In this document: in pieces, positions 29,122 through 63,751 of the stretch
How the letters are laid out: the number at the start of each line of letters is the position of its first letter
Numbering within the stretch: position 1 is the stretch's first letter
Assembly: GCA_964035545.1 (NCBI GenBank)
Contig: OZ037766.1
Location: forward strand, 3,100,001-3,164,000
DNA from: Bugula neritina
Lineage: Eukaryota > Animalia > Bryozoa
Length of the DNA: 64,000 bases
Direction of reading: 5' to 3'
Notes under the pieces: model-generated
The model's database searches: none
What the model was told of the DNA's origin: nothing
What the model saw: the letters and a program-made list of their open reading frames with translations, nothing else
Translations under genes and position numbers: made by a program

Positions 29122-32100
29122 ATGGTAGGCAAGCTAAGAAGGCTAAGGGAAGTTTATAAGTTAAGAAAAGGCATTAGTTGCAAAAGGACGGTGTCTGCAA
29201 ATACAGTTATAGCATTCGGCATCGTATTAGGAATAAGTTTAGTACCTCTAGCTTCTGCCAAATATATATACCATCCCTATGGGGTGAGTGAAGACAGCTA
29301 CGAATATGGATATACTCAACACGATTTACATTTAGACTCAAAGAATAAAAATAGAATCGAAACTGAGCAGCAGTGCAAGGTGAGTAAACTTTGTCCCTAC
29401 TTCTTAATACCCTAGATCTACCTTCACAACTTATTATTATCATAAACTTCACAATGGATTAATAATATTGTCATTAAAATGTAAACTAGCTGTGTATACT
29501 TGTATCATTGATGAGACTTTAACAACTGTTCTGTAACTCTTTTAAACATTTAAACTGCATTATTTCAGAATATACTCGATTTAAATGCAGATCTCAAAAG
29601 TTTCCTTATAATCTAACATTATTCATAAAGTTTTGACACGTGCAAATATTTTTCAAATATTATAATTTATTTGTGATTTTAATTATAAATTTTCACGCAA
29701 TTTAAATTAAGTGCACCAAGAGTTGAATGTTCTTTTACAGAAGATTGCTTAATTCACAATAATGGAATTCATGTAACAAATTTCTGCATTGTTTTCACTA
29801 TATGAACTAAAATATATCACAGCTATAGGTCTTGAGTAAATAATCAGTTTTAATAGCATCAAATCAGGCATAAACATGAGTATAGAAATTTATACTAAGT
29901 TCACCAGTTTACTTGTTGATGAAGTTGTTTCTAGAATCATCTTATTTGAATGAGCACCAATATAAGTGTTCATATGCAAACTAAGTCAGTGGGGATCATT
30001 AATTTGTTGTCTTTGTAATGCTGACTAAATTGGTATTTTCAATACATAATTTAAAATAAAAAAATGTAATACGTAGTTTAACATTACACAATAATTAAAA
30101 TAAAAAAACATTAATTTTATTCTTTTGCTTTACACTCAACACTCTGCTATGTTAAATTTGGTTAAGTAAAATCAAAGCTTTTTAATGTTATAATAGAAGA
30201 CCTTCAAGATTTGAGTATCAATCAAAGTTGCTTTAATTATTACAGTTTTACCTACTAATGGTTTTGAAATTATAATTCAGCTGCATAATTATGAAGTCTA
30301 ATACTAACGGAAGGTTAATTATTATAATTTATCAAATATATAACTATCAGCTATTGTGAATCAATGAAATAGTTGCTTGAAAGTTGAACTAAACTTATAC
30401 TTATATTAGTTGAGGTTAGTTTAGGAAACCCACAATCATAGCCAAAGTTTAGCACAACTGCCTAATAAAATGCAGACATGCAAATAAGCTCTGCAGTAAC
30501 TAGAGTAAATGAAATGACTCTTGCAAAAAATACATACAGACATGTATCCTGGGATTCAGAGTGATTGATTTATTTTGTCACAAACCGAAAAGAATGTTTC
30601 TTTGTGTCTATAAACAAGTCCGATCTGGTTTAGTTGTAGTTTTCAGATGCTAGACAAATATGTATTACCTTTTAAATATGTATTCCAAACTAATTCAGTT
30701 TGATTGATTGATATGATATGTTATAAGGAACATAACCTGCAGTTATAATTGAACTCCAAGTGGTAGCTACAATCCTCCGTACAATGTAGAGTAAACTTTT
30801 ATTTATTACAACACTATTTATTACACACTATAGACTAGCATTGGTGGCATTGCTAACAGAGTTTTGATACTTAGAAGAGGGGGAAGGGTCAACTCCACTA
30901 GAATTTGTATCAGAAGGAATAATTCAAGTATTCAAGATCAGTCATGATAATCGATCAATCACAAATTACTCTATTCTGCAGCAACATGTTAAAACACACA
31001 CACACGCGCACACACACACACACACACACACACACACACACACACACACACACACACACACACACACACACACACACACACACACACACACACACACACA
31101 CACACACACACACACACACACACACACACACACACACACACACACACACACACACACACACACACACACACACACACACACACACACACACTGAGGTTAA
31201 ATTTAGTGATAATTGTACTCTTTTTTTGTTTAAAACAGCAATGAAAATTTTCTATTCCAACGATATGTATAGTTAGAGTAATAAAGTATTAATATCCAAT
31301 ATGTCTTCCTACCAGGTTTAATAAATGCTATTTTTAATAACAGAGTTAGAAGTTTTGCTATATATATTACATTGGATCAGGGTCACAAGGTTTGTTCTGC
31401 TTACACTTACTATATACAAAGTTTCATATTAATGAAAGACTTGATATTATTTCACCATGCAATTGACTAATACGGAAATGTAATACAATCATGCCTGTAG
31501 CTTATACATTTACCATCCTTCAGTTTCCTCTAAATTAGCTTTCACTAGAATCAGTTGTTGAGTCATTTTCATTGCCTAAAAGCGTTGATGACTAAATAAT
31601 TTTCAATTTGATTGGTAATGCCCATACACCAGTCTACTACCCCTTGCTAGATGCTGGGGAACAAAAGACGGTCTAATTAAGTATTTAGGCTGAAGATTAT
31701 GTATTCAAGCAAACTTGGCATAGTGCCTATAACTTGGGCATTTAATTAACTTTATTTTTCCACTGTTGAACTGGTCTATTTTGGTACAATTGAAAATTGA
31801 AATAATTCATGATTTTATTTAGCGTATTATAAGAGTTAAGTGAAAATGAAATTTTTTGTACTCATTGATAAAATAATATAATATAAAGTCTTTCATCATA
31901 TTTTTTAAACACTATCTTTTATTACATAACTAAGCTTTGATTACGTACGTCACCCTAGCGTGGGAAAGTGATCTGGCCACTAAAGAAAGGTCATTCCTTC
32001 TGTTGAGTAAACAGCCTGCCTGTATACGAGCATCTAAACATAGTGACCTAATGATGCTCAAAAACTATGTGCATTTTAGTATAGGTAACTGAAAAAGAAA

Positions 32101-63400: not shown

Positions 63401-63751
63401 TAACTCCATCACAAAACTGAAGTTGCAAAATTGAATGGGGTTTTTATGACATTAACCAGTTATACACCATTTCATGTTATTAACATCATTTCAAAATCAT
63501 CGTTACAGAAACTAACTATGGACAGCCTACCTTTGCATCAGAAATAACATCTATAGAGTCCACATCTTCCACCTTGGACTCGGCCATTGAGATGCTAGAC
63601 ATGTTGGATCTCTTGTTTTTGCCATACAGCGCCCTCTGTATGTACTTCTCTATTGGAGACTTTGTTCTCAACCAGTTGTGTGGTGGTATCTTCAAATCAA
63701 GGTCCGGCCCCAACCACTGAATGCTAGTGGGAATTTCTCTCAGAGGATAAT
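51468..63751 (-). CDS. EDRF1: Erythroid differentiation-related factor 1 homolog, 5'-partial (about 1098 aa in the window). Exons 63751-63531, 63098-62916, 62495-62313, 61667-61549, 61292-61181, 59952-59805, 59570-59362, 58760-58650, 58271-58068, 57581-57453, 56951-56883, 56236-56116, 55758-55558, 55312-55112, 54827-54595, 54157-53996, 53685-53539, 53181-53013, 52247-52146, 51912-51795, 51624-51468
   Basis: The spliced translation has EDRF1 blocks in order: DLKIPPHNWLR, DVISDAKNIKSLL, HRVGKTLLIDE, SKFLYYSI, WQFEDIKMLIGSDLPIF, SLRLR..PITVLTGLDYWLDNLMCNVPE, AQNILSFLRSN..GHTYWLYK, VKLYDLT..NPF, KRLGNCCNE, IWDTINFELS, KSLKYC..IHHRLAS. All 20 introns are GT-AG and phase-consistent (3299 nt). The first exon(s) lie beyond 64000. 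Some boundaries (55758 vs 55830, and 52247) are less certain. Confidence 0.9.
55314..55520 (+). repeat. 15-bp minisatellite (TATACAGTATACAGG)n filling most of an EDRF1 intron
   Basis: Visible array running into the acceptor at 55314-55313. Confidence 0.92.
58805..59122 (+). repeat. 30/33-bp minisatellite (ACATGTGCCACTACCTGCTGACACCTGTCT)n, about 10 copies, intronic
   Basis: Visible array. Unit lengths that are multiples of 3 explain the four overlapping repetitive ORFs. Confidence 0.95.
61359..61556 (+). repeat. 40-bp minisatellite, about 5 copies, overlapping an EDRF1 donor site
   Basis: Unit gtacctcagtctattaccacaatgagctctaaagcagagt. Confidence 0.92.
62479..62671 (+). repeat. 41-bp minisatellite, about 4.5 copies, overlapping an EDRF1 acceptor site
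   Basis: Unit tgtggtactctgctaatctgcagaatacacttactatttaa. Confidence 0.92.

Follow-up and report, generated by a model that had tools for sequence, protein, structure and literature searches.

A convergent MMP21–EDRF1 gene pair in the bryozoan Bugula neritina, probably one half of an ancestral UROS–MMP21–EDRF1 neighbourhood divided between two MMP21 copies

Introduction

MMP21 is a human heterotaxy gene, and it belongs to a UROS–MMP21–EDRF1 locus that, in human, we take to lie in the 10q26 region. Marks of the MMP21 proteins are the cysteine switch of the propeptide and, ahead of the catalytic domain, a long insert and a dibasic site of the furin type. Edrf1, Uros and Mmp21 have been listed as members of one locus reported to be conserved between mouse and human (PMC5774710), and the expression of Xenopus mmp21 is specific to the central cells of the left–right organiser (bioRxiv 10.1101/2024.10.13.618030). 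In the literature on the control of this organiser expression of MMP21, we found no description of it.

Conservation of gene neighbours over long distances has been described for ancient microsyntenic pairs and genomic regulatory blocks, where, according to two surveys, unrelated adjacent genes keep the same orientation in distant phyla (Irimia et al. 2012, PMC3514665; Touceda-Suarez et al. 2020, PMC7530604). Our literature search returned no paper naming a UROS–MMP21–EDRF1 block and none joining EDRF1 and microsynteny, and the mouse–human locus paper was the sole one it returned with both gene names; the large published pair lists may already include MMP21–EDRF1. To our knowledge, bryozoans have been little sampled in gene-order surveys.

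Here we describe a window of 64,000 nucleotides from Bugula neritina (assembly GCA_964035545.1, contig OZ037766.1, positions 3,100,001 to 3,164,000), in which an MMP21-like gene and EDRF1 are neighbours, together with a second MMP21 copy that lies behind UROS on another contig, the latter being new here.

Results

Convergent MMP21-like and EDRF1 genes in the window

The initial annotation of this DNA had described an MMP21-like gene (+) and EDRF1 (−) as convergent genes, separated by ∼12 kb in which no gene could be recognised. This arrangement held upon closer mapping, and nothing but MITE-like repeats and a minisatellite was found in the gap.

The MMP21-like gene, which we call copy B, is a matrixin gene of seven exons on the plus strand (29122–39337), whose exons 2 to 7 were mapped by tblastn with full-length MMP21-like proteins. 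The putative exon 1 (29122..29412) starts with an ATG at 29122 and would encode a basic N-terminus plus a hydrophobic segment that could act as signal or anchor; it has no Pfam match and was assigned from its position and its signal-peptide-like sequence. Exon 2 (34630..35424; Peptidase_M10, tblastn and tree) contains the propeptide and the long insert and leads into the catalytic domain. In this exon we read by eye a cysteine-switch-like RCGQPD, an insert of ∼90 residues and a candidate furin-like dibasic site, RVKR. The middle of the catalytic domain is in exon 3 (35584..35781; Peptidase_M10; shark MMP21 residues 270–323), while exon 4 (37190..37348; Peptidase_M10, E 8e-17; tblastn) has the zinc site, HEIGHVLGLNH, and the Met-turn. 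The first hemopexin blades follow directly after the catalytic domain in exon 5 (37567..37866; Hemopexin, E 8.8e-08; tblastn and tree), more of the hemopexin domain is in exon 6 (38425..38688; tblastn; top blastp match within the MMP21 panel), and exon 7 (38999..39337; tblastn and tree) comprises the last blade and the C-terminus, closing with a TAG stop at 39335–39337. The Pfam profile of Peptidase_M10 extends over three exons (profile positions 3–59 at 34621–35439, 64–115 at 35566–35781 and 108–159 at 37109–37372), and that of Hemopexin matches 3′ of it at 37537–37917. Copy B thus has the catalytic domain of a matrixin, including the Met-turn and a zinc site of the form HExxHxxGxxH, and after it a hemopexin domain.

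EDRF1 occupies about 51.5–63.8 kb of the window on the minus strand. Its N-terminal half, with the EDRF1_N domain, was located by profile search at 59344..63788, where profile positions 19 to 447 succeed one another from 63788 down to 59344 across six exons (63519–63788, 62907–63149, 61500–61748, 61115–61345, 59779–60069 and 59344–59664). The C-terminal half, with the TPR_EDRF1 exons, was located at 51767..55232 from the profile and from shark and guinea pig matches; here TPR_EDRF1 positions 32–259 follow EDRF1_N, from 54852 down to 52951, and give strong support to the exons at 54553–54852, 53972–54157 and 52951–53181. Elephant shark EDRF1 exons are colinear with the window at 55232–53002 (exons at 55101–55232, 53632–53700, 53548–53601 and 53002–53073). 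A weak match of the C-terminal exon of guinea pig EDRF1 at 51767–51925 places the end of the coding region at or below ∼51.77 kb. We found no start codon in the first recognisable EDRF1 exon, and so the 5′ end of the gene may extend past the window. In the 216-Mb genome, EDRF1 matches were confined to this one locus, which indicates a single-copy gene.

The spacer between the two 3′ ends (39338..51766) is ∼12 kb long; its right edge is uncertain within 51.5–51.8 kb, because neither the last EDRF1 exon(s) nor the UTR could be placed. MITE-like dispersed palindromic repeats of ∼150 bp occur three times in the spacer (∼40311–40452, 48753–48903 and 49869–50022), which also has a 23-bp minisatellite (41737–42240). 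No tRNA or Rfam family was detected in the spacer (about 39.34 to 51.5–51.8 kb), and a Pfam scan of its three longer minus-strand open stretches (42273–42542, 49067–49321 and 50130–50318) yielded no family; the remaining open stretches of both strands are short and have a non-coding look by eye. A hidden gene in the spacer was rejected, as the tRNA, Rfam, Pfam, open-stretch and repeat checks lent it no support.

An MMP21-family protease with a second copy in the genome

If the protease were another matrixin that only resembles MMP21, any comparison with the vertebrate locus would be invalid. We compared the proteins exon by exon throughout. When shark MMP21 was searched against the whole genome, which has an estimated ∼15–20 matrixin loci (from 28 exon-level matches), it matched at only two of them, copy B and a second MMP21 copy on contig C1. 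The latter, copy A, lies at about 10.918–10.924 Mb on the plus strand (exon 2 at C1:10918582), has the same seven-exon layout as copy B, and contains the motifs KRCGQPD and RTKR in its exon 2, as read by eye. The duplication behind the two copies is old, judging from their identity of 31–63% per exon and from the separate relatives that each copy type has in other samples.

In a tree of exon 2 built by a careful search, both copies grouped with 16 fragments from related organisms in a starred clade (98/97), which was sister (84/72) to a clade of vertebrate MMP21 and mollusc and nemertean MMP21-like sequences (98/87, starred), with MMP19, MMP16, MMP24-like and stromelysin-like sequences falling outside. 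In the trees of exons 5 and 7, from quick searches, the two copies paired at 94 and 98 (the second value starred), respectively, and the pair was nested in a starred lophotrochozoan MMP21-like clade inside the MMP21 family; the MMP21-family clade with both copies had SH-aLRT values of 99 (starred) for exon 5 and 94 for exon 7. The outgroups of the trees were thin, six non-MMP21 animal sequences with long branches.

Every exon of both copies had its best blastp score against the MMP21 panel. Among 1.84 billion representatives, the top named full-length matches of exon 2 were MMP21 or MMP21-like, at an identity to MMP21 proteins of ∼26–30%; a word search with exon 2 alone gave eight fragments. 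The exon borders of copy A, at shark residues 271, 318, 365, 451 and 509, are those of shark MMP21, and exons 4 and 5 of copy B, which match shark residues 316–366 and 365–454, keep to these borders as well.

An origin of the protease from a different matrixin hardly appears credible from these data. It could draw on the union of the two-copy clade with the MMP21 clade being unstarred in the exon-2 tree, on the few long-branched outgroups and on the low identity of exon 2, but three separate exons gave the same placement, the reciprocal search singled out these two loci, the best named full-length matches were MMP21 or MMP21-like, and the exon borders are common to shark MMP21. The family membership suggested by the initial annotation is hence supported by three lines that agree, namely the exon trees, the reciprocal genome search and the exon borders shared with shark.

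Copy A lies directly downstream of UROS

The HEM4 (UROS) profile had its sole genome match at C1:10903609–10903845 (+), ∼15 kb upstream of exon 2 of copy A. The open stretches that separate the two genes gave no Pfam family. Copy A is directly downstream of UROS and shares its strand, which is also the arrangement of shark and fugu. The gene that comes after copy A on C1 is a COE/EBF gene and not EDRF1, and BCCIP is not beside UROS but on C2, at a distance of 5.5 Mb from the window. We also considered whether the entire block had undergone segmental duplication and rejected this, since in the fetched stretches no other neighbour was common to the C1 and C2 loci.

Gene order in vertebrates and other animals

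The initial annotation had stated that human MMP21 and EDRF1 lie side by side on 10q26 in convergent orientation. Without recourse to the human sequence, we observed this arrangement in two other vertebrates. In guinea pig, MMP21 (+) is at 10001–17582 and EDRF1 (−) extends from 20475, and the genes converge on a 2.9 kb gap; in elephant shark, UROS (+) is followed by MMP21 (+) at 10001–14985 and EDRF1 (−) from 17838. The MMP21–EDRF1 spacers are only ∼2.9 kb in both. The order in fugu is DHX32, BCCIP, UROS (+), MMP21 (+), and the 10 kb that follow MMP21 there have neither a called gene nor any similarity to EDRF1. The adjacency and relative orientation of MMP21 and EDRF1, with no gene between them, are therefore common to Bugula neritina, guinea pig and elephant shark, and those of UROS and MMP21 to Bugula neritina (C1), shark and fugu.

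Among the invertebrates, the nemertean Tubulanus has an MMP21-like gene whose convergent neighbour, 5 kb away, is a homeodomain (homeobox) gene rather than EDRF1, and it has no UROS within 10 kb. No MMP21 neighbour was present within the 10-kb flanks from Biomphalaria, Patella, Elysia, Argopecten, the frog Nanorana and the lamprey Petromyzon; these four molluscs, frog and lamprey are neutral on linkage because the flanks reach just 10 kb and are empty. A 15-kb metagenome contig of a related organism ends 2.3 kb past its MMP gene. We searched the fetched 10-kb flanks, including those of fugu and the nemertean, for EDRF1 and UROS by tblastn and tblastx, using the sequences of the window, of shark and of guinea pig as queries, and obtained no match.

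The two adjacencies as probable parts of one ancestral neighbourhood

Both adjacencies and both orientations in Bugula neritina are those of the vertebrates, and the genes are orthologous. The MMP21–EDRF1 pair, which the initial annotation put forward as a candidate for ancient microsynteny, is real in this respect, and the adjacency of UROS and copy A on C1 is a second, independent match to the vertebrate order, beyond the pair in the window. With the vertebrate trio divided between the two copies, a chance adjacency becomes very unlikely. As EDRF1 and UROS each occur at a single locus, the chance of a given gene standing beside either would be about one in the number of genes, and this has happened twice, with matching orientation.

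We also weighed whether the Bugula neritina lineage and the vertebrates could each have acquired both adjacencies on their own, through chance or convergent rearrangement, in which case they would not inform us about the ancestor. A genome-wide scan of thousands of neighbouring pairs would be expected to match a human adjacency about once by chance, and the nemertean has no linkage. The UROS match, however, was not a scan hit but a targeted prediction from the vertebrate block, correct in order and strand, and two matches that involve single-copy genes, both rightly oriented, would be jointly very improbable. We therefore give an independent origin very little weight.

Hence, we consider it probable that the window represents half of a UROS> MMP21> <EDRF1 block that was inherited from an early bilaterian ancestor and split between MMP21 copies. 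In jawed vertebrates the three genes still form one contiguous block. In the Bugula neritina lineage, MMP21 would have been duplicated long ago and the block broken between the copies, so that copy A retained UROS upstream of it on its own strand and copy B retained the downstream convergent EDRF1. The simplest order of events would be a tandem duplication giving UROS–A–B–EDRF1, with A and B then parted by a break. Against this ancestry are the nemertean, which is without the linkage, and fugu, which is without EDRF1 in 10 kb. The ancestry rests on jawed vertebrates and one invertebrate lineage.

Non-coding sequence around MMP21

The initial annotation had further suggested that the pair is held together as a constrained regulatory block, for instance through enhancers of MMP21 located within EDRF1 or just 3′ of it, and this suggestion gained nothing from the search for conserved non-coding sequence, in which blastn of the shark locus against the guinea pig and fugu loci aligned exons only. 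Between shark and guinea pig, only the MMP21 exons matched, and neither the MMP21–EDRF1 spacer nor the portion of EDRF1 that was fetched showed any conservation. This comparison covered 10-kb flanks and conservation at the sequence level. The presence of mobile-element-like repeats in the 12-kb spacer of the window counts against a regulatory reading as well.

Discussion

Why the neighbours stayed together may be explained in two ways, both of which assume an ancestral linkage. MMP21, as a tightly regulated developmental gene, could have control elements that reach into or toward both of its housekeeping neighbours, and each MMP21 copy would after duplication keep one side of this control landscape. 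We propose only tentatively that the linkage was retained due to control elements of MMP21 extending into or toward UROS and EDRF1, with one side left to each copy.

It is similarly conceivable, if short of likely, that the linkage was retained passively and under no functional constraint, as one of the small fraction of ancestral adjacencies that chance leaves intact, with few breakpoints falling in short spacers and the duplication leaving one neighbour to each copy. The vertebrate spacers of ∼2.9 kb offer a small target for breakage, but those of Bugula neritina, 10–12 kb in a compact 216-Mb genome, are not small targets. The unlinked genes of the nemertean, the position of fugu EDRF1 (more than 10 kb away or gone), the lack of conserved non-coding sequence between the shark and guinea pig flanks and the tolerance of the window spacer for mobile-element-like insertions are all in keeping with passive retention; the survival of both sides of the trio would be less expected under pure decay, and a published survey attributes most deep pairs to constraint (PMC3514665).

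Under the regulatory explanation, the two copies could even serve as a natural dissection, copy A keeping the UROS-side elements and copy B the EDRF1-side elements, and each driving part of the ancestral expression; we think this rather doubtful. If it were true, the trio would be a regulatory block around a left–right patterning protease, and UROS and EDRF1 would be the genes within which to look for the organiser enhancers of vertebrate MMP21. More generally, a neighbourhood that would predate the protostome–deuterostome split and was shared out between duplicates hints at where the control elements of MMP21 may lie. It provides a clean worked example of deep microsynteny and offers a simple comparative test.

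Compared with the jawed-vertebrate UROS–MMP21–EDRF1 locus, the two Bugula neritina loci taken together have the same gene content, order and strands, and MMP21 has the same seven-exon layout. The vertebrate locus is contiguous, whereas the Bugula neritina trio is divided over two MMP21 paralogues on different contigs, and the spacers are about 3 kb in jawed vertebrates against 10–12 kb here. Copy A is also followed by COE/EBF, where vertebrate MMP21 has EDRF1, and UROS is not accompanied by BCCIP. The arrangement is like that of genomic regulatory blocks in placing a developmentally restricted gene, MMP21, between neighbours of the housekeeping type. However, the usual targets of such blocks are transcription factors, while MMP21 is a secreted protease, and the present case is one of gene order. 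Finally, in duplication–degeneration–complementation, or the dismantling of blocks after duplication (PMC7530604), each copy likewise keeps a different flank; in Bugula neritina this partition is seen at the level of the neighbouring genes.

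A convergent MMP21-like and EDRF1 pair

The Bugula genome is 216 Mb, AT-rich and assembled in 321 contigs, and its 28 matrixin exon matches gave an estimate of roughly 15–20 loci. On the + strand of the window, three open stretches together carry the Pfam domain Peptidase_M10, and Hemopexin comes after them. Alignment of full-length MMP21-like proteins by tblastn defined six coding exons of this gene (copy B) at 34630–39334 (+), with the stop codon at 39335–39337 (+). An open stretch starting from the ATG at 29122 (+), which encodes a signal-peptide-like sequence, is likely to be its first exon. 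The first intron contains a long (CA)n tract (30950–31190). The upstream neighbours of copy B, within 15390–17950, are a V-ATPase subunit D gene (−; ATP-synt_D exons 17270–17755 and 15938–16231) and, just upstream of that gene, a tRNA-Ala(TGC) gene (17878–17950, +). We also noted a single-exon open frame of a rhodopsin-type GPCR (365 aa; 1366–2460, −).

On the − strand, matches to the EDRF1_N profile descend in order from 63788 to 59344, and those to TPR_EDRF1 from 54852 to 52951. The shark EDRF1 exons aligned colinearly with this gene, and a C-terminal exon of guinea pig EDRF1 had a weak match at 51767–51925. EDRF1 matched one locus in the whole genome. In the region 63480–64000, its first recognisable exon comes after possible acceptor sites at ∼63752 and ∼63789 and lacks a start codon; therefore, the 5′ end may lie beyond the window. 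The gene must have either a further coding exon upstream or a spliced leader. Coding-looking tandem repeats are present within its introns (55070–55540 and 58750–59200). Thus, the Pfam profiles and the tblastn exon maps both bear out the convergent arrangement described in the initial annotation.

The ∼12-kb spacer between the two genes was likewise devoid of any recognisable gene, as had been stated: searches for tRNAs and Rfam families found none, and the three longer open stretches scanned had no Pfam family. It yielded only repeats and a minisatellite. Palindromic dispersed repeats of roughly 150 bp (40311–40452, 48753–48903 and 49869–50022) match dozens of genomic places on both strands with 77–87% identity, and behave as miniature inverted-repeat elements would. 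The minisatellite comprises 21.6 copies of a 23-bp unit (41737–42240), and a similar array is present at positions 9057658–9058237 of contig C4.

Assignment of the protease to MMP21

The protein analysis was done exon by exon rather than on a joined spliced model. A search of exon 2 against 1.84 billion representative sequences matched mostly single-exon fragments; the best named full-length matches were MMP21 or MMP21-like proteins of frog, snail, nemertean and catfish. In the careful exon-2 tree, the window exon fell within a starred clade, which is sister (84/72) to vertebrate MMP21 together with the mollusc and nemertean MMP21-like proteins, while MMP19, MMP16, MMP24-like and stromelysin-like sequences were outside this grouping. 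The exon-5 and exon-7 trees, from quick searches, placed copy B inside a starred clade of lophotrochozoan MMP21-like sequences, itself part of the MMP21 family. Shark MMP21, when searched against the whole genome, matched two loci and no others, and all the exons scored best against the MMP21 panel. The exon borders of the other locus (copy A, on contig C1) are those of shark MMP21 (residues 271, 318, 365, 451 and 509); exons 4 and 5 of copy B, as mapped, correspond to shark residues 316–366 and 365–454. Despite thin outgroup sampling and some long branches in the trees, four kinds of evidence agree in assigning the protease to MMP21, and the trees of exons 2, 5 and 7, the reciprocal shark search and the exon borders concur with the earlier orthology call.

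A second MMP21-like gene beside UROS

The vertebrate locus was analysed in guinea pig, elephant shark and fugu, with no human contig. The last position of guinea pig MMP21 (+) is 17582, and EDRF1 (−; 1236 residues, EDRF1_N and TPR_EDRF1) extends from 20475. The elephant shark has UROS (+), MMP21 (+; 10001–14985) and EDRF1 (−; from 17838) in that order. Hence the convergent adjacency given in the initial annotation holds in jawed vertebrates, and UROS is also a member of the block. Fugu keeps DHX32, BCCIP, UROS and MMP21 closely packed; the 10 kb after MMP21 (fugu locus L003, 12767–22766) had no called gene and no EDRF1 similarity. In teleosts, EDRF1 may have moved or become distanced from MMP21.

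The remaining members of the vertebrate block were sought across the Bugula genome. Its sole UROS (HEM4) match, C1:10903609–10903845 (+), is ∼15 kb upstream of copy A, which has the same seven exons (C1 ∼10918205–10923528, +); open stretches between the two had no Pfam family. Downstream of copy A is a COE/EBF transcription factor gene (COE1_HLH and TIG exons, C1 ∼10928267–10930431, −). BCCIP, which accompanies UROS in vertebrates, is at C2:8609843–8611141, on the contig of the window and 5.5 Mb from it, and not beside UROS. Copies A and B share 31–63% identity per exon, each has its own relatives among fragments from other samples, and the trees pair their lineages as in-paralogues. Bugula thus has the trio UROS–MMP21–EDRF1, split over two old duplicates: copy A follows UROS on the same strand of C1, and copy B is convergent with EDRF1 in the window, each with the order and strands seen in vertebrates. 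The UROS–copy A linkage is a new result, widening the microsynteny beyond the pair described initially.

Common descent or chance

A genome-wide scan is expected to give about one accidental match to a human adjacency, so the window pair would by itself be weak evidence. With UROS, by contrast, the prediction was specific and concerned a gene that matches the genome only once; its prior probability of success would be about one divided by the gene number, orientation uncounted. As there are two matches, and that of UROS was predicted beforehand, independent origin of both adjacencies, taken together, is very unlikely. Shared ancestry of the linkage has good support.

A nemertean, Tubulanus, is without the linkage. 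Its MMP21-like gene (L001, 10001–13106) has five exons, the introns that correspond to shark positions 318 and 451 being absent; a homeodomain gene 5 kb away is its convergent neighbour, and there is no UROS within 10 kb. A contig from a related organism stopped 2.3 kb beyond its MMP gene, too short to show a neighbour. In four molluscs (Biomphalaria, Patella, Elysia and Argopecten), the 10-kb flanks of the MMP21-like gene were empty of genes, as they were in a frog (Nanorana) and a lamprey (Petromyzon).

Persistence of the linkage

The initial annotation took the pair to suggest a constrained regulatory block. Such a block around MMP21 is a hypothesis that would fit the very local expression of frog mmp21 in the left-right organiser (bioRxiv 10.1101/2024.10.13.618030) and the way in which the duplicates neatly divide the flanks. 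On the other hand, the search for conserved non-coding elements did not favour it, since blastn among the three vertebrate loci, with their 10-kb flanks, gave similarity in exons only, and the Bugula spacer tolerates mobile-element-like repeats. Passive survival of an ancestral adjacency is a serious rival explanation for the persistence.

The microsynteny is real and deep, and is one more case of a well-known kind of feature. The vertebrate block has the trio around one MMP21, whereas in Bugula it is shared out over two MMP21 copies.
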